Assembly (NCBI GenBank): GCA_002269645.1
Contig: NIVC01000641.1
Span: 62,001-126,000, forward strand
Length of the DNA stretch: 64,000 nucleotides
Origin: Macrostomum lignano
Lineage: Eukaryota
Reading direction: 5' to 3'
The number at the start of each line of letters is the position of its first letter. The stretch's first letter is position 1. Shown here in pieces: positions 15,218-29,816 of the stretch. A model generated the notes under the pieces. The model saw only the letters and a program-made list of their open reading frames with translations. It ran no database searches and was not told the origin of the DNA. A program made the position numbers and the translations under genes.

Positions 15218-18200
15218 GGAGTGCATCAGTGCGCTGCGGGTGGCAGAGATTATTAGCTTTATGATAGGGCTAGGGTAGGGTTAGATAGGGTCTTGGGTAG
15301 AGTTATACATAATTGAGAGAACAATCTGATTAAAGCTGTAACTGTATAGAACTATGCTTTATTTTAAACTATAGCTAAATCAAACATTTTGATTCGCAAA
15401 AAAGTTTGATAAATTGAATACAAATTCAACTGAATATTTAAATAATATTGACAATTAAATTGCATCTTTTTTATTAATATGTTTTACTCACTGATATAAT
15501 TAACTGTTCTGTACTAAAAATACAGTGAAAAAACTATGTTAAATGAACAAAACATGTCACATTTAAATTTAAATAAGATATTTAAATAAAAACCTGTAAG
15601 TAAGCTTATATAGAAATTATAGAAATATAGAAACTAATTGATGGTAAAATTGATTAGAATATCTATTTAAATAACCATATTAGCTTAAAATCTAATGCAA
15701 AAGCAAGAGTTTTTGGTTAACAATTAAATGATGTAGTAAAGTAGGCACTAATATGGTGCAATAACAACAAATTGAAGAGGGCTAAGCATATTGTTGTATA
15801 TAATATAATATTTTATTGTTTTCTGTTAAATAGGCCAACATAAAATTAAGCTGTCTTCGTCCGTCAGACAGTAATCATACAGATTTACAGTCATCTGTAT
15901 GGCGATAGGCCTAGCATTTATTAATAGTTTAACAATTTTTAAGTTTAGTAGATTGTAACAGAAAGTAATAATGTTTTCGAAAAAGAAAGCATTTCATTGT
16001 AACTTTAAAGATGCTTGTAACAGCTCCAATTGTCATATTGGGTAAAAGTTTGAGCAGCAAAACAATTCTACTTTAAAGAGCATAGCTAAGCCTAAAACAC
16101 TTATTATGCAGATATGCAGTTCTTTTAAAAAGACCATGTTAGAAACGGAGGTGAAGCTTTGATGAAAATACATGTTATAACAAATGCACACAGGTGAAAA
16201 TTAGGAAAAAGTGTATTTTCTGACGTTCGGGGACTCTATTTTGTCTAAATATTTTTTCTGAGCTAACAACCAAGCAGAGAGAGATAAAAACTTTAATTTT
16301 GAACTAATCTGTGTGTATAAATTAGCACTTCGATTGTTGCCTTTAAGCGCAGTCCCAAGTCACAAGTGGGTCTAAAATTTGGTGCACCAGAGAACGTAAA
16401 CAGTTCGAGCACAGGCTTCATAGAGGCTAATTAGACTAACATCATGCGCTTAGCGGGAAAGCAAAACAAAAAACTAAAATGTACAAAATGGAAAAGTCTT
16501 AAAACGCTAACGAGACATATATATGTGCTGTATGTATTGTACAATCAACCGAAATCAAGAGAACTCGGGTAGTTATAACTGGATTAATTTTTGCTATTGG
16601 CGCGTGATTTTTTTAGCGTAAAAAGGGATGAGCTTAGCAAAATGCGATAAAGGCGGAAAACTACATGAATAGTAATTCAGATCCGTTTAAAAAACAGGAC
16701 AGACTGGCTCGTATTTGCCTTGTCAATACAGTTCTTTATGTACCCAACGTAAAGAATTGTGCCCATGATTTTTTGAAGAAAGTCACACAGAGCATTTGCT
16801 ACCGTGAGTTCTTTAAAGCCCAAAAACCTACACGGAAGCTATACTAATATATTGTTTTGATTGCAATATCAAAATCCGTATCCGACAACATTTACATTTA
16901 ACCGTTTTTCTGTATGGATTGTCTCATTGAAGATGCATTCGTTCAACTTGGATGCACATTAGCTGCTTGAAAGTCATTTGTTAATACTTCTTCGAATTTG
17001 GATAGCTTACAAAAAACAAGTATAAGAATTTGGAATCTAGTAGGTGTGTGGCGTATTATGCAAAGAAAATGTTATAAGCAGAAGTTCCCCAAAGAATAGA
17101 TTTTCTAGGGGCAAGCATGTAGCATTGTGAACTGCGCTGTTACAGTGTGCTGTCAACACTACTGTCTAACTTAATTATCACCAGCGGCTTTGACTTTAAG
17201 CTGTTTGTTCGCGCCACGGAAACGACAGTTTTGAGAGCCCTGAATGCGGGCAAAACAAGCAGCCTGCCATAGCACTGTGTGACATAGCTATACGACAAAT
17301 GCAAATAACAAGTCTTTGAAAGACTTCTGCTTGTTGCAAACGACTTATTTCTGAAATTGAATTACTCTCGTGTGGACTATCGGAACTAACTTAAAATCCG
17401 GATGCTTTAGTTCTGTGCAGAGGCGTTCATTCAGAGTGAGAAATGCGAATTCCAAGTCAGTTCGCTGAATGGAAAAGAGATATACATTTGCATGTTAAGC
17501 ATAGGGAAGACTTGCTGCAGGCTTGCATGTCGCAACTCACTGCTGCCACAGCATACCCTCCTATAGATTTATTGAAGTTCGTTTTTTACTATGCAAGAGA
17601 CTTAACTCGAATTAGCTAGCGAAAAAATTTGTGAACTTCAAAAAGAGTTGAAATTATTGAAGTGCTGTCTAATACAAAACAGTTTTATAAAATTGCTGAA
17701 CATTTTGTTAATCCTTTAAGCTTTTATGCAGACAACGGAGGACAGCAACTTTAATGTTGGCACTATATTGGTAATAGCTCAGCTTCCAAACAAATAATTG
17801 GTCTATTGACATGCTGAAAAGTATTATTGGAGAGCAGCAAACAGTCCCAGAATGCAGCTGTGACCTATAAATGCAGCTCGAAGCGGAGAAATATCTAGTT
17901 AATATAGAATGCCAAGGCAGCCCTCGCAACTGAAGCCGCTCAGCGGGCACCTACTTTTGTCCCATAGACATCAGCAGCTGCCATAGTCTATGGGCCAAAA
18001 GGACATTTGATACATTTGTACGCCTGGTACATCTGCTTGCATTTTAAAGCTGAATCAGGGAAGCCTCTATCGTCACTGCGCTTTGACCATAGAGGCTTCC
18101 TTGGCTGAATTCAAAGCAAATACCGACTCAGTAGGCTTCTTAAATGTTCCTAATTTTGTCTTAAAATAAAGTCAACACAAACTGCAGGGAATTCTTGATG

Positions 18201-18679
18201 CAGCAAGTTTTGAACATAAATTATGAAAACCAGTGCTGCTGAATATAAATCGTTAAAATCGTTTTTATCGATTCTCAGGGTTGCTGTAAACGTTGCAAAA
18301 TTTAGAAGCATCCTAAAGGCCGTAAAATAGGACAATTGTGGAGAATAATTTTAAGCAGCATCTAACAGGCGAAAATTATCATCGCTGCGAAAGGCCAAAC
18401 GACCAATATAGATCTGCATCGTTCGAATTTATAAAAAAATTCACTTGCTACATACAGACAGACAGACAGACAGACAAACATCGCAGCAGTTTTAGTATTA
18501 GGACTTAGGTATTGTATTAATAGCAAACAAATCAGTACCAATGCAAAATGCTAAATTTCTGTCAAAAGAAAAGTCACGCCTGCTATCTCTTACGTACGAG
18601 CTGAGTAGTCTTTCAAAAAGCAGAGACAAATTATCAGAGTGATTCGGAAATGTCAGTTGATAAGCAAGCCTGTGTCTTC

Positions 18680-21600
18680 TCAATTCACAAAGCAGGCCGT
18701 CAGGGCCATCGCAGCGGCGGCCCACAGAAGCTGTCGCAGCGGCCCGGCGGCCAGCCAGCTCGAGTCCGACTTTGACCTCCCGATGAGTTGACAGCGCTCA
18801 GCCTGCGGAGACTCCGAGCAGAGAGTGTGCACGAGAAACCTGCGGAGTGGGCGAGATGTCTGTCTGATGCGGGGAACAGACCGAAACAGAACAGAGTTAA
18901 ATGAAAAAGACAGAATACTTATACTCTGCACTAGCACAATAACGCTCACAGCGGATTGTCCTGACAGTTGACCCGTACGCCCTTCAACAGCAGCCGCTGC
19001 CGCAGTCGCAGCACTGACGGATCCATCCGACATGCGCTGTAAGCAGACGCCAGACGCGGATCGTTGAGCGAGCGCAGCGGGTAGACATCGACCTGGCTGA
19101 TCCGCGGCGGGCTGAGCTGGGGCAGCTCGAACTGGCCGAAGATCCTCAATGGATTTTCAGGGCGAAAAAAATTATAGGCATTGTAATTTTTTGATTGTCA
19201 GTCTCACCCACCCGTCTAATTATAAACCCCAGCCTCCCCACCTGTCTAATTATAAACCCCAGCCTCCCCACCTGTCTAATTATAAACCCCAGCCTCCCCA
19301 CCTGTCTAATTATAAACCCCAGCCTCCCCACCTGTCTATTTATAAACCCCAGCCTCCCCACCTGTCTAATTATAAACCCCAGCCTCCCCACCTGTCTAAT
19401 TATAAACCCCAGCCTCCCCACCTGTCTAATTATAAACTCCAGCCTCCCCACCTGTCTAATTATAAACCCCAGTCTCCCCCACCTGTCTAATTATAAACCC
19501 CAGTCTCCCCCACCTGTTCAATTATAAACCGCAGTCTCCCCCACCTGTCTAATTATAAACCCCAATCTTCCCACCCACCTGTCCAATTATAAACCCCAGT
19601 CTCCTCCATCTGTGCAATTATAAACCTCAAGTCTCTGACATGCCTAATGGTGAGACGAAGACTAATTTGACAAGAACTTCGGTGGAGGTGGATAACTCAC
19701 GAGGTCTCTCGGAAGGGATTCGCCACAGATGCGTTCAGTAAGACGGACACTTTTCCTGTAGATTTGCCTGCAAACTTATTGATTGTCAAGGCAGAAGATT
19801 TTTGTTTATTCAGTATTGTTCAAATGTCATAAGAATTAACTGTGCTCTCCAAACCAGGATACTGTGAGCATAAAGTGAAGATAAATCGATTATTCATTCT
19901 CTTCTTAGCGCACTCAAATAAAGATGGGCATTTTCAAATATTTCAAGTGCGATAAGAAATTCTTCACGTTCTGGATAAGTGAGGTGTTTGACATTAGCAC
20001 TTATTGCCATGATAATCCTTTGCAAAAGATAACATCTCGAATTTAATAAGATTTTCTGGAATTCTCAGAGCCCCAGCTCGTCAAACCTCACCGACCCGCG
20101 TCTCTCTGTTTGCCTTGTCTGCAGAATCGAAATTAGAATCAACGGCGATGCTAACTATCACGCCTAAAATTACAAATGCAGTGAAAAATAATTGCAGCTT
20201 AGGGCGGCGAGTCCAGGGATTTGCTCCAGTCCCGGTGCTGCAGTTTTTTTAGCTGCTCAAAATTGCTGAAGAAGCACCTGGCAGATGACTGAAGACGATT
20301 TGCCGAAAGGATCTCCGTGTTATAAGTTACAGACACTGCCACACCAATCGGTACTCAGCAATGCACTCAGCAGAGACACTGCCACATCATTCGCTACTCA
20401 ATCATGCACCCAGCAGAGACACTGCCACACCAATCGGTACTCAGCAATGCACTCAGCAGAGACACTGCCACACCAATCGGTACTCAGCAATGCACCCAGC
20501 AGAGACACTGCCACATCATTCGCTACTCAGCAATGCACTCAGCAGAGACACTGCCACACCAATCGGTACTCAGCAATGCACCCAGCAGAGACACTGCCAC
20601 ACCAATCGGTACTCAGCAATGCACTCAGCAGACACTGCCACACCAATCGGTACTCAGTCGTGCACTCAGCAGACACTGCCACACCAATCGGTACTCAGTC
20701 GTGCACTCAGCAGACACTGCCACACCAATCGGTACTCAGCAATGCACCCAGCAGAGACACTGCGACACCAATCGGTACTCAGCAATGCACCCAGCAGAGA
20801 CACTGCCACACCAATCGGTACTCAGCAATGCACCCAGCAGAGACACTGCCACACCAATCGGTACTCAGCAATGCACTCAGCAGAGACACTGCCACACCAA
20901 TCGGTACTCAATCATGCACCCAGCAGAGACACTGCCACACCAATCGGTACTCAGCAATGCACTCAGCAGAGACGCTGCCACACCAATCGGTACTCAGCAA
21001 TGCACTCAGCAGAGACACTGCCACACCAATCGGTACTCAGCAATGCACCCAGCAGAGACACTGCCACACCAATCGGTACTCAGCAATGCACCCAGCAGAG
21101 ACACTGCCACACCAATCGGTACTCAGCAATGCACTCAGCAGAGACACTGCCACACCAATCGGTACTCAATCATGCACCCAGCAGAGACACTGCCACACCA
21201 ATCGGTACTCAGCAATGCACTCAGCAGAGACGCTGCCACACCAATCGGTACTCAGCAATGCACTCAGCAGAGACACTGCCACACCAATCGGTACTCAGCA
21301 ATGCACTCAGCAGAGACACTGCCACACCAATCGGTACTCAGCAATGCACTCAGCAGAGACACTGCCACACCAATCGGTACTCAGCAATGCACTCAGCAGA
21401 GACACTGCCACACCAATCGGTACTCAGTCGTGCACTTAGCAGAGACGCTGTCTGCACTAAAATTATGCATAGCAACAAACTCTGTTGCTCACCCAACTGG
21501 AAGCGGCAATCCAGAAAGGCAAGGTAAAGTTGGTGCAGCTCTCCCGACGCGTCACCTGACTGTTGGTTGATCGCCTTCTTCTCAGAGAAATTTTACTACC

Positions 21601-24600
21601 TCTGGTGTTGACGTCGCAGCGGTAGTTGCACCAGTCCATGGAGTTCATGATGAACCCTGCGGGTCGCATCGTTCAATGAAACATCAATTATTTTTACTTT
21701 AAGCGCGTTGCGATATTCACTGATTTCAGCCCTCAATCCCGAACGCCATTTCAGGAAAGCGCCGTTTCTTTTAAGGGTGGAAGGGGCTCGAACCCCAACG
21801 GCCTTGGGTTGTTTTCCTGGTAAAACAAGCTGAAGGCTTGTGTCACAAAAATAACGGCTAGGTGAGCAGCTCAACTCACCGATCAGAGTCTCCTCCAATG
21901 GGAAATACTCGGGCATATCGCGCACCCTGATAACCAGGCTGTAGGCGGTGCCTGACCAGAACACAAACTGCAAATTGTGTGTTGAGAAGCATTGCGGAGC
22001 GGTGTCTGAATAAATTTCATTGTTACATTGTGCGACATGTGCGTTGCTCTCTCAGGCTCATCAGGTTAAACCTGATAAAGATCAGTTTCCGTTTTACTGC
22101 CAGCAGATCTACCTTGCAGCAACTGACTAACAATTAGTTACTATGGGGATCAGAGGTGCGAACCCATGAAAGCCAGCTCGCAGTAGTGAACCCTCTCGAT
22201 CCAGCTAGTAGAGTCACCTTTGAAGGAATTGCTCTAACACCACTCATCACTCGCCAGTACAGCACATGCAGCACGTACTTCCTGGATCTAGCTCGTACTT
22301 CTAAAAACATTCAGAAAATAAATTACTTATCATATCTGCTATTGCACTTCTGTTATAAACTGGCATCACCTATAATATTAATAATAATTGATTACACCTG
22401 CGTTAATTGGCTGATGTGCAACCGACAGCTCAGCCGCAGCTATTGCGTACGGCTGCAAGGATTGAGGGGTCGCCACGCACACCCTCAATTAACCCAGCTA
22501 ATGGTAGTACCCATTTTACAGCTGGGTGAACTGAATCAATGCAGAGTTAAGTGTCTTGCTCAAGGACACAAATTGTTCCAGTGGGATCGGGAAAGAACCC
22601 CCGACCTTTCAGTCGTGAGTCCTTCGCTTTAACCACTAGGCTACAACCCCCTATGCTGGCCATGCGATTTCGAAGTTGACATGGTGCACGAAAACAGTCA
22701 TATTAGTCACACCTTGTCAACTGGAATTTCGTGATTGGCCATTTGCAGCAGCCCCGCAAAATCATCAGGCTCCGGCCGACAGTGGTCCGGTTGCAGGGCG
22801 ACGAAGCGAAACTCTTCCCACAGCCGGGAGCAGTTCTTTCGGCTGGATCTGCAAAGTGCGGGTTTCCAATAGCTAAATATTTGCTAGAATAGCAAGGCTA
22901 CATTGTGCACTTAAAGATTAATATACCTGCTATTTTCCTGTCTCAAGAGAGATTGAAGACTTGGGAATCCTTATTGACTCAAGCAGAGCCCGTGCATAGC
23001 TCTCTAGTCGAACGTAAAATTATCTTTTACAAGCAAACGCCTTCGGGCTTCATAGATAACCAGTCAGGCTCAAGGCCGCGGACTTAGAGGCCATGAAAAA
23101 CATACATGAAATACATACATACATCGTTCCATCGAGTGGCCTTTTGCCTGGCGGTCCAATACCTAGCTGTGCCATTGTTCAAAATGTCTATGGTAATTTA
23201 AGTTTAGGCAATGGCATTCAAGCAATGACCGGTCATTGTTTAAAATTGACAGTATAGCAATTTACCGGAATATCATTTTAGAAAACAAACAAGTCTAAGA
23301 GCGTAAAATGAAATAGTCTATGGTTGTAAGTGGGGGCTTCGCCCCACACCTTCATTTCCCCTCCCCATTCCTATCCTGGATGGACAAATTGACAAATGAA
23401 GTTAGCTGAAAGTGATAAAACACAATTCTGACTTCCAGACAACCCCCATTATCAACCCCGCAAATTGAGTGATAGAGAAAGCGCGAATTAGTTGATACAA
23501 CGAGCTGTCTATGGCCCGAACTCTAAGTGCATACCCGGAAATTCCTTGCTACGACCGAAGGGAGTTGATAGTGAGGTCCGAGGAACAATTTTGATGACGA
23601 ATTTCGATAAAGTTTCGTCCCTTGATTTGTGCCAGGTGTCAAAATGCGTAGAAAAGATGGAATTTTACAATGAAATAACAAAAACGGAAATTCGATACCT
23701 CTTTTGTATTCGAAGAATGCCAGAAATTTTTAAAACGGCCCTTTTCGGAGAAAATGTAACCCGCAAAAATAAGCAACTGCTTTAAAAAATTTGCGCATGG
23801 CCAATAAGTAGAGTCCCGGAAGGAACGAAAATCGGCTCCACTTTAGACTCCTCTATTGGCATTCTATGCATACTCGATATTCTCTGCTTACAACACTTAT
23901 TAAATCAGTAACGAATCCGATTATTGCACTTCTAAGTAACTGTCACCCATAGACAAGACTTGAATTTTCCCCCATAGTATCTGCTGAGTCGTGCGACTAA
24001 TTTCCCCCACTGATATGTAGAACACTCGGCAATATTGGCGCCGGACTACTCAACCAGCATTTTTACGATCATTCCCTCAAAAATTCGGTAAATGAGTTTA
24101 GGCGAAATGCGACGAACGTGTTCCCAACTCTTGTCTGGAGCTGATGGGGTCTGATATTTGCATTATTAAATTGCATTTTCCTTTGTTTCGGGAGGCGGAC
24201 ACAGAAGCGATTCTTAATAAAATAGTGCAAATCCACCATCGAATTGCTTTGTTTAAGTCAACAAAGTTGAGCATGAGATTCAGCCAAAAATAGTTAACTA
24301 TTAACTTCATTTAGGATGTTTATAGTAAGTTTTTATCTCCCAATAATTCGTGTTTAACCATTTTTTGGGCTCCAGTCAGCAACTCAATTCACTCAGCTCC
24401 AGAAATTTGCTAATGGCACCAATCAAACTGGACAATGAAGTTAATGGAGTAAATGAAACTTTTCCTGACAGTGCAAACAACAGAATATTGCTGTTTAATT
24501 ACCGTTTATTAACACACGCTATAAAATCCTTTCGCTCAGATGGTTCCCTCATCATGTGTCGCAATCAGTCAGACTTAGTCCGTCATGATTCCTCCCAGTT

Positions 24601-27600
24601 GCCTCATCGTCTTCTTCGCTGCTCTGCTCGCTGCTTCAACCACTGAAGCTGCCGATGTAGCCTCGCCAGACGCTGCCGTGATGGCGGCGCTGAAGCTTGG
24701 CACCGACTACAACAGGGCGGTCCGGCCGCCCCCGGACAATGGCACCGCAAACACTGTGACCTTGGTCATCTTTCTGTTCAGCCTCGTCAATGTGGTGAGT
24801 TGATATTTTCCGAAGCTCTAGGAGACATTGATTTAATTATTACTAGTCCTTGTCGATTTCACAGGACTCTGCGTCTCAGGAAGTGACACTGCAGTTTTCT
24901 CTTTCGAAGGTCAGTACTTGCTTGTATTGATTAGGGGGGAGAGATGCTTTGTCTAACTGGATTTCATTACGAAAAGAACCTGCTATAAAGAAGCTTTTCG
25001 AAACCTTGCCGCAGCAATGGCTCGACGCTCGCCTATCATGGATGACGAAGTCTAATTCGTCATTGGGCAGAGTGCAGAAAATATCCGTTCCCTCAAAAAT
25101 GGTCTGGATACCGGATGTTTCTGTTGACAATGTGTAAGTTGAGGCCCCGTTTTCTGAATCTCGCGGCAATTTAATAATGATGTTTCCGTATCTATTACAG
25201 GTTGGGGATAAAGGATATTTCACTGGATGAGCCACCTGTTTCAGTTTTTAACTATGGCTTGGTTCGACACGAGAAAGTGCTGCTTGTCACGTTTAAGTGT
25301 CAGATGGAGATGCAATATTTTCCGTTTGACAGTCAGAAATGCGGCTTTAGCATCAGGTCTAAAAATTCACCTGACCAAACAAAGCTGAAGATATATTTCG
25401 ACAGAGACTTTCCTCCGGAAAAATACTTGTCAAGGAACAACGAATTCTGCATCAAGAGAGTATTTTTAGAGGAGCATCGATTGGATGTAGTTGATGCAGT
25501 TATTCTTGTGCTTAAATTTCAGGTAAGAAATCATTATGTTCGCTAAACTTTCTAAGGATGATTTCGTAGCTCAGCGGTAAAATGTGTCTGACTCTCGCAA
25601 CAACACGGGTTCGATTCCGTGATTCTCACACCTGTGATAATCAATATCAAAGGCGCAGAGAATGTACCTGTCTCAAATCTGACGATTAGCAAGTCAGCTG
25701 GCCGCTGTACAGCCTGTGTGAGCGTGCTGTATGAGTGCGTCACTGTGCACAGTATTGGTGCGTGCTTGCATGTGCTCAGGAGTCAGCGGAGATGTCACTG
25801 AAGGCGTTGCGCCAGGGTGTCCACAGCATCCTGCGATTATTATTATTGACTTACGGGACTTCAGGCTTCTTTCAACCTATAGAGCCTATCTATAACTCAT
25901 ATGAAATACACATTTTAGCCCACTCATTAGAGCCGAAAGTAGGATCGTGGACCTGATGATTCAATCATTAAATGCAAACGTAGATTAGTTTATACACATT
26001 TACCATTTGATTTTAGCTCTAGGGACTGTGCAAGTTGCTAAACTTCGCGCGGAACTGATCATTTCGCGCGTTCAAAAAGCCTCGGTAGTCTTTTGAATGG
26101 ACCAATTTGAACACATCGACCTGAAAATATTTGATTGCATTGCTTCTTTTAAGAGACGGTCGGCGTTCTACGTGACGAACCTGCTCTTTCCGAGCATCCT
26201 CCTGCTCGCCATCTCTGCATTCGCATTCCGAATGCCTCCAGACTGCGGTGAGCGAGTCTCCTTCAGCATCACAATCGTGCTGTCGATGTGCGTGTTCCTG
26301 CAGCTGGCTGGCAACTACACGCCCACGCAGAGCGAGTCCGTACCACTCATCAGTGAGTCGCGAGATATTCGTTCTGCTGACCAAATCTCTGTACGTACAT
26401 GTACGCTCATGTGGTCACAATTTCCATTGCAGCTTGGTACTTCAGCATCGCAGCAGTGATGACAATTCTGAACGCGCTTTGCAACATATTCGTGCTGAGG
26501 TGTCACTCCAAGCAGCACAACAGCGCTCACGTCAGCAACCGGCTGATCCGTGCTCTATTCCTTAACCGACTCGTGACTGGGAGGAAACCACAGGTGCATG
26601 CTGCTCAAGATACAGCTGACCAGACTGAGGTCTCTGATGGAGACATCCCGCCAAGTCCCCTGCAAGACAATGAGTGGAGCATTGTTGTAGCGTCAGCCGA
26701 CAAAGTGTTCTTTGCGATGAACGTCTTCGTCACTGTGATTACAGCCATACTCACGACTGTATTTGCAATCAGTGCATATTCGGACAATTGCATTGAAGGA
26801 ACCTACTCTTCGGTGGTTGATTTGGTCAAAGATGAATAATTTCTCCTTGTTTATGCTATCATTAACCACGATAGAAATATTTTGCCATCGCTAGCAAAGG
26901 TGGTCTGGTCACAATTTTGGATGATGAATTTCGATAAAGAACTGCTCTAAAATTTTACGTCTGGTCCCTTAATTTGTGCCAGGTGTCAAAATGCGTAGAA
27001 AAGACGGAATTTTACAATGAAATATCAAAAACGGAAATTCGATACCTCTTTTGTATTCGAAAAATCTCAAAAAAACATCCAAAACGGCCCTTTTTCAGTG
27101 AAAATGTAACCCGCAAAAATAAGCAACTGCTGTATGTAGCAAACAATCTAATTAACTTAGATGATTAAAATCACAGGGAAATTATAGAATGATATTTGGA
27201 TTTTTGTTTAAATGCGTCAATTTTTATCTGCCCGTAATACCCAATTGAAGTACTAATTATGTACGAAATTTGGTTTTTTGCAGATAGCTCGAAAACTTTG
27301 CATACAAACGTATTGCGAAAATACTCCCATGCACTAAATCTATCAATTATCTACAAAATGGCACCTTATGTATCCACGGATTGAATGAAAACTGAGGGAG
27401 CAGGATGAGGGCGTGGGGGGCGGAGACAAAACAGTTTTTTTGGGGGCGGAGTTTTTCTTTGGGGGCGGAGTTTTTCTTTGGGGGCGGAGCCTTTAAAACT
27501 CAAACTTAAAGGAGACAAAGTTTTATTCTATGGCAAGATATACCGAGCATAGAAACAATTTAGTGCGCTTTCGATGTTTTTCTGTCTAATTTGAGGAAAT

Positions 27601-27944
27601 GTTCAGACTCCTGAATGCCGTTTTTTTATAGACTGGCTTTTACAAAAACTGACAGATCAACAACAGTAAGCCGCGATTAACTGATTGCGGACTGCGTTTG
27701 GCATTAACTACTGTCCCTATGAAATGATGCCCCCCGCGTCTCCCTGACAACTACTGCATTGACCGCCCGGCACTCACATCTGAGGGAATAGTTCCGGGTG
27801 TCGCAGCAGCTGGAATTCATTGCACCGTCCGACAAAGATGGCCATGAGCGATGCTTCATCAGGCAGCTGGGCCTGCTGAATGGGTAGGAAGTGAAGCACA
27901 ACCAGCAGCAGCAGTGGCAGCAAAACAGACTCCCTTGCTATCAT
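18680..27944 (-). CDS. ADP-ribosyl cyclase / NAD(P)+ glycohydrolase (CD38/CD157/SmNACE family), signal peptide and probable GPI anchor, about 327 aa, 7 exons
   Basis: Exons 27944-27778, 22848-22713, 21967-21880, 21656-21493, 19774-19701, 19144-18950 and 18839-18680 are all phase-compatible. Motifs: FVGRC..FQ, NCSRLWEEF, FWSG, PLEETLIGF (TLEDTL signature), DWC, FWIAAS, VLLNAS, FGQFEL (catalytic Glu), ten family-position cysteines and a hydrophobic C-terminal tail. Confidence 0.9.
19205..19640. repeat. 30-bp intronic minisatellite (CCCACCTGTCTAATTATAAACCCCAGCCTC)n
   Basis: About 14 copies filling most of intron 5 of the cyclase gene. Confidence 0.95.
20330..21450. repeat. 43-bp intronic minisatellite, about 26 copies
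   Basis: Unit CAGAGACACTGCCACACCAATCGGTACTCAGCAATGCACTCAG in cyclase intron 4. It explains three ORFs of about 385 aa. Confidence 0.96.
22445..22651 (-). mobile_element. tRNA-derived SINE
   Basis: The minus strand shows A-box TAGCCTAGTGG, a degenerate B-box GGTTCTTTCC, then GTGTCCTTGAGCAAGACACTTAAC...CACCCAGCTGTAAAATGGG, a body typical of metazoan SINE2 elements. Confidence 0.8.
23585..23781 (+). repeat. Dispersed repeat of about 200 bp, copy 1 (copy 2 at 26911-27131)
   Basis: Shared text GAATTTCGATAAAG...TTTGTGCCAGGTGTCAAAATGCGTAGAAAAG...GAAAATGTAACCCGCAAAAATAAGCAACTGCT. Confidence 0.9.
24585..26839 (+). CDS. Divergent nicotinic acetylcholine receptor-like Cys-loop channel subunit (cation-type TM2), about 433 aa, 6 exons
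   Basis: Exons 24585-24794, 24865-24909, 25015-25133, 25201-25522, 26154-26352 and 26433-26839. Signal peptide, YNRAVRP, QWLDARLSW, WIPDV, Cys-loop CQMEMQYFPFDSQKC, RRSAFY-TM1, PPDCGERVSFSIT-TM2, TM3 and TM4. Confidence 0.93.
25560..25810 (+). mobile_element. tRNA-derived SINE in intron 4 of the Cys-loop gene
   Basis: A-box TAGCTCAGCGG (25567-25577), B-box GGTTCGATTCC (25608-25618), then the GGCCGCTGTACA..GTGAGCGTG body shared with other copies. Confidence 0.75.
26911..27131 (+). repeat. Dispersed repeat of about 200 bp, copy 2
   Basis: Same orientation as 23585-23781, with an insertion of about 24 nt. Starts 72 nt after the Cys-loop stop codon. Confidence 0.9.
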
Positions 27945-29417: not shown

Positions 29418-29816
29418 TCATTCGTCTTTAACGTCGCCAACAGCGGCTACAGCCTCAATCTCCACCAGGGCCTGCTTGGGCAAGCCAGCTGCCTGGTAGC
29501 AGGCCCTGGCTGGGAATGGCTCGCTGAAATGCTTGGCGTAGATGGCGTTCACCCTGGCAAAGTCGTTCATATCGGCCAGCAGCACCGTGGTCTTCACCAC
29601 CTTGCTCATGTCTGAGCCGGCCGCTTTCAGCACAGCCGCCATGTTAATTAGCACCTGCTCAGCCTGCGACTCAACATCTGGCCCGGCCATCTGCATGGTG
29701 GCAGGGTTGAGGCCGATCTGACCAGACATGTACAGAGTCTGGCCGAGCTGCACTGCCTGGCTGTATGGCCCAACTGCAGCGGGAGCAGATGTGGTTGCAA
29801 TGATTTTGCGAAGCAT
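29418..29816 (-). CDS. RIDA: RidA/YjgF/UK114 family 2-iminobutanoate/2-iminopropanoate deaminase, 132 aa, intronless
   Basis: APAAVGPYSQAV, YMSGQIG, VVKTTVLLADMNDFARVNAIY, PARACYQ (catalytic Arg) and LPKQALVEIEAVA. Confidence 0.95.
   Translation of the reverse strand: MLRKIIATTSAPAAVGPYSQAVQLGQTLYMSGQIGLNPATMQMAGPDVESQAEQVLINMAAVLKAAGSDMSKVVKTTVLLADMNDFARVNAIYAKHFSEPFPARACYQAAGLPKQALVEIEAVAAVGDVKDE

Follow-up and report, generated by a model that had tools for sequence, protein, structure and literature searches.

A Cys-loop channel subunit gene lying antisense within the first intron of an ADP-ribosyl cyclase gene of Macrostomum lignano

Introduction

The nesting of VAChT in the gene for ChAT is the textbook case of an arrangement that reflects a shared pathway, and both genes make use of common 5' exons and promoters. 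VAChT lies on the same strand as ChAT, consists of a single-exon open reading frame (ORF) in an intron, and is conserved in this position from nematodes to mammals (PMC3053374). Protein-coding genes within introns are common in animals, and include about 6% of Drosophila genes (PMC3786989). Among channel families, the nAChR-like expansions of molluscs consist largely of intronless retrogenes in tandem arrays (PMC6896357).

Here we describe a locus of the flatworm Macrostomum lignano in which a complete gene for a subunit of the pentameric ligand-gated ion channel (pLGIC) type lies within intron 1 of a CD38-family gene. The pair has, to our knowledge, not been described before. The window analysed is a stretch of 64,000 nucleotides that is 100% identical to contig NIVC01000641.1 of assembly GCA_002269645.1. 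In our judgement the locus is probably a genuine nested pair of independent units, in which a DNA segment was inserted in an old intron and later copied by genome duplication.

Results

The host gene

The host consists of seven exons on the minus strand (27944-18680; Table 1) and is annotated as PAA79305.1 (P0004, BOX15_Mlig028261g2). Splicing of these exons at their GT-AG borders yields a 327-aa protein with every residue matching PAA79305.1. This exact reconstruction bears out what an earlier note on the same DNA had given for exon 1 (27944-27778), the start of exon 2 (22848), the phase 2 junction and an intron of ~4.9 kb. Exon 1 ends in phase 2 and is directly followed by the donor GTGAGT.

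Table 1. Features of the nested locus, numbered along the 64,000-nucleotide window
Feature	Position	Strand	Description
Cyclase exon 1	27778..27944	-	167 nt; ATG, signal peptide, first conserved helix with GRC cysteine
Cyclase intron 1	22849..27777	-	4,929 nt, GT...AG; holds the entire channel gene on the opposite strand
Cyclase exon 2	22713..22848	-	SSRKNCSRLWEEF...; acceptor TTTGCAG before start at 22848
Cyclase exon 3	21880..21967	-	FVFWSG...LEETLIG; conserved Trp and Glu
Cyclase exon 4	21493..21656	-	FIMNSMDWC...PFWIAASSW
Cyclase exon 5	19701..19774	-	
Cyclase exon 6	18950..19144	-	IFGQFELPQL, including the catalytic Glu position
Cyclase exon 7	18680..18839	-	Hydrophobic C-terminal tail, then stop codon
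Direct repeat, upstream copy	23585..23784	+	~210 bp; brackets the channel gene
TATAAA	24520..24525	+	65 nt upstream of channel ATG; candidate guest promoter (motif only)
Channel exon 1	24585..24794	+	ATG, signal peptide, start of ligand-binding domain
Channel exon 2	24865..24909	+	45 nt, DSASQEVTLQFSLSK
Channel exon 3	25015..25133	+	QWLDARLSW...WIPDVSVDN
Channel exon 4	25201..25522	+	Cys-loop C158-x13-C172, C158-CQMEMQYFPFDSQKC-C172
Channel exon 5	26154..26352	+	TM1, TM2 with GERVSF motif, TM2-TM3 loop
Channel exon 6	26433..26839	+	TM3, short intracellular loop, TM4, stop codon
Direct repeat, downstream copy	26911..27134	+	~90% identical to upstream copy; start-to-start ~3.35 kb
ATTAAA	27164..27169	+	325 nt downstream of channel stop; candidate poly(A) signal within host intron (motif only)

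The protein matches the Pfam profile Rib_hydrolase (PF02267; 1.4e-48, 165.9 bits) over positions 3-241 of 241, which is the full-length domain. Exon 1 covers profile positions 3 to ~27, the GRC cysteine included, and the alignment to Aplysia cyclase (2e-27) is unbroken over residues 32-296, passing through the exon 1/2 junction. Four motifs are paired between the Macrostomum and Aplysia proteins (FVFWSG/MFWSG, LEETL/LEDTL, PFWIAAS/SFWGMAS and FGQFELPQL/FGKYELPNL). In this alignment the catalytic Glu and both active-site Trp positions are retained; the CD38 equivalents of the conserved active-site residues are E226, W125, E146 and W189. The host product is a member of the CD38/Aplysia-cyclase family with predicted ADP-ribosyl cyclase/NAD glycohydrolase activity. 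The hydrophobic tail encoded by exon 7 resembles a GPI-anchor signal, and the protein is probably secreted and GPI-anchored. By tblastn, the 64-kb window holds one cyclase gene and one pLGIC gene only.

The guest gene

The guest occupies 24585-26839 of the plus strand and is, as the earlier note had proposed, a complete six-exon channel gene antisense in cyclase intron 1. Its GT-AG exons join into an ORF of 1,302 nt (433 aa); 1,737 nt separate its ATG from host exon 2, and 939 nt its stop codon from host exon 1. The protein carries Neur_chan_LBD (PF02931; 5.5e-29, 101.6 bits, cut-off 26) followed by Neur_chan_memb (PF02932; 8.3e-19, 69.2 bits, cut-off 28.1), the domain order of the Cys-loop/pLGIC superfamily. 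The signature Cys-x13-Cys disulfide loop is present and contains FPFD. The closest solved structures are those of 5-HT3A (1e-39, residues 18-364) and nAChR beta-2. Alignment to 5-HT3A places TM1 at 237-257, TM2 at 271-285 and TM3 at 300-320, and a hydrophobic TM4 is found at 390-414. The GERVSF motif before TM2 is the same as in 5-HT3A and suggests cation selectivity.

The ligand-binding site is divergent. The roles of the aromatic-box and vicinal-Cys residues are known from 5-HT3A and nAChR. In the alignment to 5-HT3A the aromatic box is missing from the channel: the loop-B Trp is replaced by Lys179, the loop-D Trp by Ser, and loop C has no aligned aromatics. Loop C also contains no vicinal Cys pair, and the CC dipeptide occurs nowhere in the protein. 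As both the aromatic box and the vicinal Cys are absent, the protein is best filed as an orphan subunit and not as an acetylcholine or 5-HT receptor.

The host intron encloses the coding sequence, the candidate TATA (24520) and the candidate poly(A) signal (27164). Judging from these motifs, the channel appears to have its own promoter and poly(A) signal there.

The duplicate locus and the state of the channel gene

A second contig, NIVC01002287.1 (L002), carries a ~98% identical duplicated locus with the same nesting and both genes intact. At this locus the channel ORF is kept, and so is each of its 12 exon borders, which comprise 10 GT/AG splice sites plus the start and stop codons. The nesting is older than the recent M. 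lignano genome duplication and was then copied along with it. Between the two loci the cyclase shows five synonymous differences and one non-synonymous difference, and is under purifying selection. The channel shows four synonymous and 11 non-synonymous differences, giving a dN/dS of ~0.84 that is indistinguishable from neutrality, although 15 substitutions provide very low power for detecting constraint. Indels give a different picture: there are none in the 1,302 nt of channel coding sequence, as against 18 in 3,115 aligned non-coding nucleotides of the same intron. Approximately 7.5 would be expected in the coding sequence (Poisson P = 5e-4).

These observations bear on whether the nesting is real but the channel silent or becoming a pseudogene, in which case it would be a surplus copy within an expanding family, recently relaxed and without an independent role. 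The gene is missing from the RNA-seq-derived GenBank annotation at both loci and from every protein set searched. No protein more than 81% identical to it occurs in a database of 5.8 billion clusters; the 81% match is a third channel paralogue (P0005) from the older ML2 assembly, and the nearest proteins outside Macrostomum show 24-28% identity. Filtering of the GenBank annotation dropped transcripts that overlapped repeats (PMC5730564). An obvious RidA ORF at 29418-29816 was also missed by this annotation. Given the repeat filter and the missed RidA ORF, the absence of the channel from the annotation is weak evidence. The locus tags Mlig028261 and Mlig004070 gave no matches in a full-text literature search.

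Several further features would fit a decaying gene. Divergence in the channel coding sequence (1.15%) is near that of the intron (1.54%), and the copy on NIVC01002287.1 has the substitution C278Y in the pore-lining TM2, where four of the five retrieved paralogues have Cys and the fifth has Ser. A 192-bp indel also separates the two copies ~150 nt upstream of the channel ATG. However, the 433-codon ORF and its ten splice sites are kept in both copies, and coding indels are lacking where several were expected. On balance a silent or decaying channel is unlikely but deserves some weight, and the channel may be expressed.

Paralogues, other lophotrochozoans and functional linkage

A paralogous channel of the same Macrostomum clade (P0021, locus L003) has the same six-exon layout as the nested gene, and there is no cyclase within 10 kb on either side of it. 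A partial second copy lies downstream of P0021 on L003, and exon 4 is duplicated in P0005; the clade duplicates locally. The earlier note had suggested looking for the same nesting at paralogous loci, and the outcome is divided, with the arrangement repeated at the duplicate locus NIVC01002287.1 and lacking around P0021. The loop-B position varies among the Macrostomum paralogues, where K, Q, I/V and other residues occur.

For the cyclase, no match from outside M. lignano exceeded 33% identity in a HMMER search at full sensitivity, and the homologues from outside Macrostomum show about 30-33%. The best ten matches from outside M. lignano comprise five Logan transcripts and proteins from a frog, a scallop, a hemichordate, a snail and a nemertean. 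Synteny was compared in the three lophotrochozoan genomes among these matches. In Lineus longissimus, Mizuhopecten yessoensis and Pomacea canaliculata, intron 1 of the cyclase gene lies at about the same position as in M. lignano, where it directly precedes the conserved NC[ST]xLW motif. Since the nemertean, scallop and snail homologues share an intron at about this position, host intron 1 is old. No similarity to pLGICs was found in these three genes or within 10 kb on either side of them. The nested pair is specific to the Macrostomum lineage, its absence elsewhere having been observed in these three lophotrochozoans.

The earlier note had gone further and speculated that enzyme and channel could form a producer/receptor module, with possible co- or anti-regulation. 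Under this proposal a product of the ecto-NADase (ADPR, cADPR, NAADP or nicotinamide) gates the orphan channel, and the nesting has been selected for coordinated or opposed expression. The binding-site residues do mark the channel as a true orphan (Lys179, Ser, and a loop C with neither aromatics nor vicinal Cys), and the products of both genes would face the extracellular side. The nesting and both ORFs are kept at two loci, and a nested pair with a functional link has a precedent in VAChT, which lies in the first intron of ChAT (PMC3053374). However, the ~98% identity of the two loci extends to non-coding DNA, so that the common nesting is simply inherited and is uninformative on selection for linkage. 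In Lineus, Mizuhopecten and Pomacea the cyclase genes have no pLGIC inside or near them, P0021 lacks a neighbouring cyclase, and the variable loop-B position argues against a common specialised ligand site. No amino-acid constraint is detectable in the channel since the duplication. The antisense arrangement also leaves the pair with no shared promoter or exon, unlike ChAT/VAChT.

We therefore found no support for the module and regard it as very unlikely. The more specific claim, in which a product of the host ecto-NADase gates or modulates the channel and antisense nesting enforces reciprocal or coordinated expression, is highly unlikely. If true, producer and receptor would be hard-wired together in the genome, and the channel would be the first of the pentameric type with an NAD-derived ligand.

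The preferred reading is that of two independent transcription units. Because the genes lie on opposite strands, no shared promoter or transcript is possible. The host polymerase would run antisense across the guest, and the whole guest would be spliced away with host intron 1. The sole coupling expected between functionally independent genes of this kind would be generic transcriptional interference, if both were active in the same cell.

The exon 1-exon 2 junction of the host

Nesting also requires that the host splice across the guest. All five cyclase models retrieved as sequences contain the junction ...ELFPQ|ISSRKNCS...; two of them are transcript-derived GenBank models (P0004 and P0020) and three come from the older ML2 assembly (P0001-P0003). 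P0020 was reproduced exactly from the duplicate locus NIVC01002287.1. The GenBank annotation of M. lignano derives from a genome-guided RNA-seq transcriptome (PMC5730564), and use of the junction is predicted from the gene models together with this published method.

If the first exon of the cyclase instead lay elsewhere within 22849-24584, with 27944-27778 foreign to the gene, the two genes would be merely divergent neighbours. The earlier note had itself raised a different first exon in 22849-24585 as the observation that would overturn its reading. An in-silico scan of 22849-24584 found no credible alternative first exon, and the only stretch with a usable phase 2 donor (23175-23123, MAQLGIGPPGKRPLDGT) has neither a signal peptide nor homology. 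Exon 1, on the other hand, encodes the signal peptide and the start of Rib_hydrolase with its conserved helix and Cys, continues the Aplysia alignment over the junction, and is used by all five models from two independent annotations. Phase 2 and both splice sites match exactly at 27778/22848, and tblastn found no further cyclase exons upstream in the 64-kb window. Divergent neighbours are thus highly improbable. An assembly mis-join that placed the channel between cyclase exons 1 and 2 is the least probable reading, even in a genome that is redundant and rich in repeats (PMC5730564), since the separately assembled contigs NIVC01000641.1 and NIVC01002287.1 agree in order and orientation and remain collinear through the whole intron, and the junction is common to models from the older ML2 assembly.

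Origin of the nesting

At both loci the channel is bracketed by direct repeats (Table 1). We propose that a DNA segment of ~3.3 kb settled in the old cyclase intron 1 in the Macrostomum lineage, and that it carried a complete, intron-containing gene of the divergent cation-type Cys-loop class between the ~210-bp repeats. The five introns kept by the channel point to arrival at the DNA level, which may have been by duplication or transposition. Retroposition was rejected on the same ground and on the six-exon layout found also in P0021. Both the insertion and a role for the repeats are inferred from the two copies in 64 kb, and a dispersed element that inserted twice, independently, could also account for the repeats.

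Two other kinds of candidate feature were discarded. Possible tRNA-derived SINEs, noted by eye in channel intron 4 (~25560-25630) and cyclase intron 2 (~22490-22650), were dropped after ARAGORN and Rfam gave no matches; the suspected stretch has one weak relative only, within the window. At 20285-21570, a 43-bp tandem repeat gives rise to long ORFs (384-388 aa) that are reading-frame artefacts.

Discussion

The locus is a nested-gene pair of an ordinary kind, and none of the findings shows the two genes working together. As the evidence stands, it provides nothing new on NAD signalling or channel pharmacology, and the practical yield is small. The two intact Cys-loop subunit genes on NIVC01000641.1 and NIVC01002287.1 can nevertheless join the public annotation of M. 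lignano. The locus is also a clean, dated example of a gene-bearing segment that came to lie in an old intron and then passed through a genome duplication, and it lends itself to tests of transcriptional interference in a transgenesis-capable flatworm.

In its architecture the locus resembles Drosophila 2mit, which is likewise a complete gene on the opposite strand within one intron (intron 11) of an unrelated host, timeless2 (PMC3786989). The Macrostomum guest differs in being unannotated and known here from its sequence. The likeness to VAChT/ChAT is that the guest occupies the first intron of an enzyme gene (PMC3053374). However, the Macrostomum guest runs antisense to its host, contains five introns and seems to possess a promoter of its own, and the three other lophotrochozoans compared lack the nesting.

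The individual genes also have described counterparts. The channel is similar to the divergent nAChR-like expansions of lophotrochozoans in being a divergent cation-type Cys-loop subunit from a species-restricted clade that duplicates locally (PMC6896357). In contrast to the molluscan expansions, it keeps six exons and sits alone in the intron of another gene. The cyclase, like Aplysia cyclase, CD38, BST1/CD157 and schistosome SmNACE (PDB 1LBE, 3ZWM, 1ISF; PMC7252647), has a full PF02267 domain with, by alignment, the catalytic Glu and both Trp, and carries a signal peptide as well as a hydrophobic tail at its C-terminus. It is set apart from this group by an additional basic stretch inserted in exon 4, SKISLRRRRSTNSQVTRRES.

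Structure of the host gene

The minus-strand host, the ADP-ribosyl cyclase/NADase gene BOX15_Mlig028261g2, encodes PAA79305.1 (P0004, 327 aa). The GenBank locus of this protein (L001) matches window 37944-8680 at 100% identity over 29,265 nt, which places the window on contig NIVC01000641.1 of assembly Mlig_3_7 (GCA_002269645.1). GT-AG exon combinations were searched for exact translation to this protein, and a single seven-exon solution was obtained. This exact reconstruction confirms the exons 1 and 2 proposed in the earlier note, with a phase-2 intron of 4,929 nt (22849-27777) between them. Exon 1 translates to a signal peptide followed by ...IFVGRCNEFQLLRHPELFPQ, and exon 2 reads (I)SSRKNCSRLWEEF....

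P0004 is covered end to end by Pfam Rib_hydrolase (1.4e-48), and its alignment to the Aplysia ADP-ribosyl cyclase (2e-27) is unbroken over residues 32-296, starting within exon 1 and crossing the exon 1/2 junction (residue 55/56) without a break. The FWSG, LE(E/D)TL, FW and (F/Y)ELP motifs, in which the family has its active-site Trp and Glu residues, are kept relative to the Aplysia enzyme. This independent homology evidence agrees with the junction. Among 5.8 billion protein clusters, four M. lignano models named "ADP-ribosyl cyclase/cyclic ADP-ribose hydrolase" were matched, all with the junction ELFPQ|ISSRKNCS. Because the GenBank annotation of Mlig_3_7 was made from RNA-seq transcripts, assembled both with genome guidance (StringTie/TACO) and de novo, and not by ab initio prediction (PMC5730564), the junction also has indirect transcript backing.

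The earlier note held that another cyclase first exon, within 22849-24584, would undo the nesting. In an exhaustive minus-strand scan of this interval, a single stretch from an ATG to an acceptable phase-2 donor turned up (23175-23123), rejected for want of a signal peptide and homology, and by tblastn the 64-kb window holds just one cyclase gene. The nesting therefore stands.

A full-length homologue of RidA/L-PSP (YjgF/UK114) is encoded by an intronless 132-aa ORF that shares the strand of the cyclase and lies 1.5 kb upstream of it; the ORF matches Pfam PF01042 at 2.2e-42 and is missing from the gene calls of the GenBank contig. The 'g2' locus-tag suffix suggests that the cyclase comes second in a transcriptional unit, of which RidA could be the first gene. 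Two cyclase introns hold large tandem arrays; the ORFs of 384-388 aa in three frames of the intron 4 array are spurious.

Coordinates of features in the window (window position x = NIVC01000641.1 record position x + 62,000) and in the duplicated locus L002
Feature	Position	Strand	Remarks
Cyclase exon 1	27944-27778	-	167 nt; phase-2 end, then GTGAGT
Cyclase exon 2	22848-22713	-	preceded by TTTGCAG
Cyclase exon 3	21967-21880	-	
Cyclase exon 4	21656-21493	-	
Cyclase exon 5	19774-19701	-	
Cyclase exon 6	19144-18950	-	
Cyclase exon 7	18839-18680	-	
Channel exon 1	24585-24794	+	GT-AG splicing
Channel exon 2	24865-24909	+	GT-AG splicing
Channel exon 3	25015-25133	+	GT-AG splicing
Channel exon 4	25201-25522	+	GT-AG splicing
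Channel exon 5	26154-26352	+	GT-AG splicing
Channel exon 6	26433-26839	+	GT-AG splicing
Candidate TATAAA	65 nt upstream of channel ATG		motif only
Candidate ATTAAA	325 nt downstream of channel stop codon		motif only
Direct repeats, ~210 bp	23585-23784 and 26911-27134		
RidA ORF	29418-29816	-	
Tandem array, cyclase intron 4	20331-21450		43 bp x 26 copies
Tandem array, cyclase intron 5	19199-19626		30 bp x 14 copies; much longer in L002 (about 17991-19930)
19-bp unit, host intron	27435-27489		TTTCTTTGGGGGCGGAGTT x 2.9
Window-only segment, 192 bp	~24241-24433		~150 nt upstream of channel ATG
Window-only segment, 274 bp	~23172-23446		host intron
L002-only segment, 249 bp	near window 27605		host intron
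L002 cyclase exons (listed)	L002 10001-10167 and 14864-14999		
L002 channel gene	L002 13587-11337		antisense to cyclase

The nested channel gene

The six guest exons splice into a 1,302-nt ORF of 433 aa with a signal peptide and both Cys-loop receptor Pfam domains, far over cut-offs, confirming a complete plus-strand gene inside cyclase intron 1. The C-x13-C loop with FPFD spans C158-C172, TM1-TM3 align to solved receptors and TM4 is hydrophobic. Among solved structures, mouse 5-HT3A (1e-39) and nAChR beta-2 are the best matches; from the pre-TM2 motif GERVSF, the same as in 5-HT3A, we infer a probable cation channel. In the 5-HT3A alignment, Lys and Ser occupy the loop-B and loop-D Trp positions, and loop C has neither aligned aromatic residues nor a Cys-Cys pair. 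Since these usual features are missing, the earlier label of orphan channel is fair.

The closest paralogue, P0005, is 81% identical, and the closest proteins outside Macrostomum are 24-28% identical (5.8 billion clusters). Neither the channel protein nor its L002 duplicate is present in the protein-cluster database searched, and the gene is missing among those called on NIVC01000641.1. Because the candidate TATAAA and ATTAAA motifs both fall within the host intron, the guest may be a self-contained transcription unit. The same intron carries a G-rich, GC-box-like 19-bp repeat ~300 nt from cyclase exon 1.

Duplication of the locus and constraint

The P0004 cluster holds a second GenBank protein, PAA59199.1 (BOX15_Mlig004070g1, P0020), from contig NIVC01002287.1. 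This locus (L002) aligns collinearly to the window with ~97-99% identity and shows the same nesting, which the earlier note had proposed looking for at paralogous loci. The hidden polyploidy of M. lignano is recent, and duplicated blocks of at least 95% identity total ~180 Mb (PMC5730564; PMC10468722); the L002 nesting is therefore inherited and not an independent occurrence.

The two cyclase coding sequences show six differences, five synonymous and one non-synonymous, a clear sign of purifying selection. The channel shows 15 (4 synonymous, 11 non-synonymous). Its dN/dS of ~0.84 does not depart from neutrality (P = 0.48) and its coding divergence (1.15%) is near that of non-coding sequence (1.54%), as might be seen if the guest were a silent or decaying copy. 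This is a live but minority possibility, an unlikely one. Against it, the ORF and 10 of 10 splice sites are kept in both copies and the coding sequence has no indels, compared with ~7.5 expected (P = 5e-4) and 18 in the non-coding sequence aligned within that intron. The pattern reads as a reading frame still maintained, with amino-acid constraint weak or unmeasurable over so brief a time.

Through large indels, three segments of the host intron are present in one copy only; the 192-bp difference could affect the guest promoter. At L002 ~11900, Tyr replaces Cys at channel residue 278 in the pore-lining TM2 (SMCVFLQ to SMYVFLQ), a position held by Cys in four of the five retrieved Macrostomum paralogues and by Ser in the fifth.

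Origin of the nesting

In scallop (Mizuhopecten), snail (Pomacea) and nemertean (Lineus) cyclases, the first intron (~0.4-2.9 kb) lies a few residues before NC[ST]xLW, as in M. lignano; judged by this matching place, host intron 1 is old. By tblastn, neither these introns nor the 10 kb flanking each of the three cyclase genes hold a pLGIC. In the snail, a second cyclase copy (L006 15113-22437) adjoins the first, and its model joins Rib_hydrolase to a 7TM GPCR domain (7tm_1) in a single 630-aa product, either a mis-merged annotation or an enzyme-receptor fusion.

A retrocopy origin of the guest is rejected because its five introns are kept in the six-exon layout of the transcript-supported paralogue P0021, and the guest thus arrived as DNA. 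Local tandem duplication occurs in this channel clade, as shown by an incomplete further copy downstream of P0021 and by a doubled exon-4 segment in P0005. The former (L003 14665-16574) lies ~2 kb downstream of BOX15_Mlig027167g2, with just its exons 1-3 inside the fetched sequence. Direct repeats, ~90% identical and 3.35 kb apart, flank the guest on both sides. The most economical origin is that the host intron received, by insertion or duplication, a ~3.3-kb unit of a tandem channel array prior to the genome duplication. The repeat has just two copies in the 64-kb window, both at matching places in L002, and was not found in 22.6 kb of L003. We hold the insertion loosely, because the repeats could instead belong to a dispersed element that happens to be present twice, and not mark the edges of an inserted segment.

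Proposed functional coupling

The earlier note had suggested that enzyme and channel form a ligand-producer/receptor module. The nested antisense structure is borne out, but none of the tests run supported such a module. Host and guest lie on opposite strands, the nesting appears confined to the Macrostomum lineage among the lophotrochozoan cyclase loci compared, the 10-kb flanks fetched around the clade member P0021 (L003) contain no cyclase, and putative ligand-site positions vary freely across channel paralogues. Any mechanistic effect is expected to be generic only. Host transcription would run antisense across the guest, and both promoters firing in one nucleus could lead to interference or double-stranded RNA; non-overlapping expression is predicted if such interference occurs.

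In the best-known functional case of nesting, VAChT lies on the same strand as ChAT and shares 5' exons with it. Its location in the first intron of ChAT is reported to be shared by animals from nematodes to mammals (PMC3053374). Neither the shared strand and 5' exons nor the wide conservation applies to the M. lignano pair. Intronic genes make up ~6% of Drosophila genes (PMC3786989) and nested antisense genes are common; the cyclase/channel pair is a new, unannotated case of this well-known gene arrangement.
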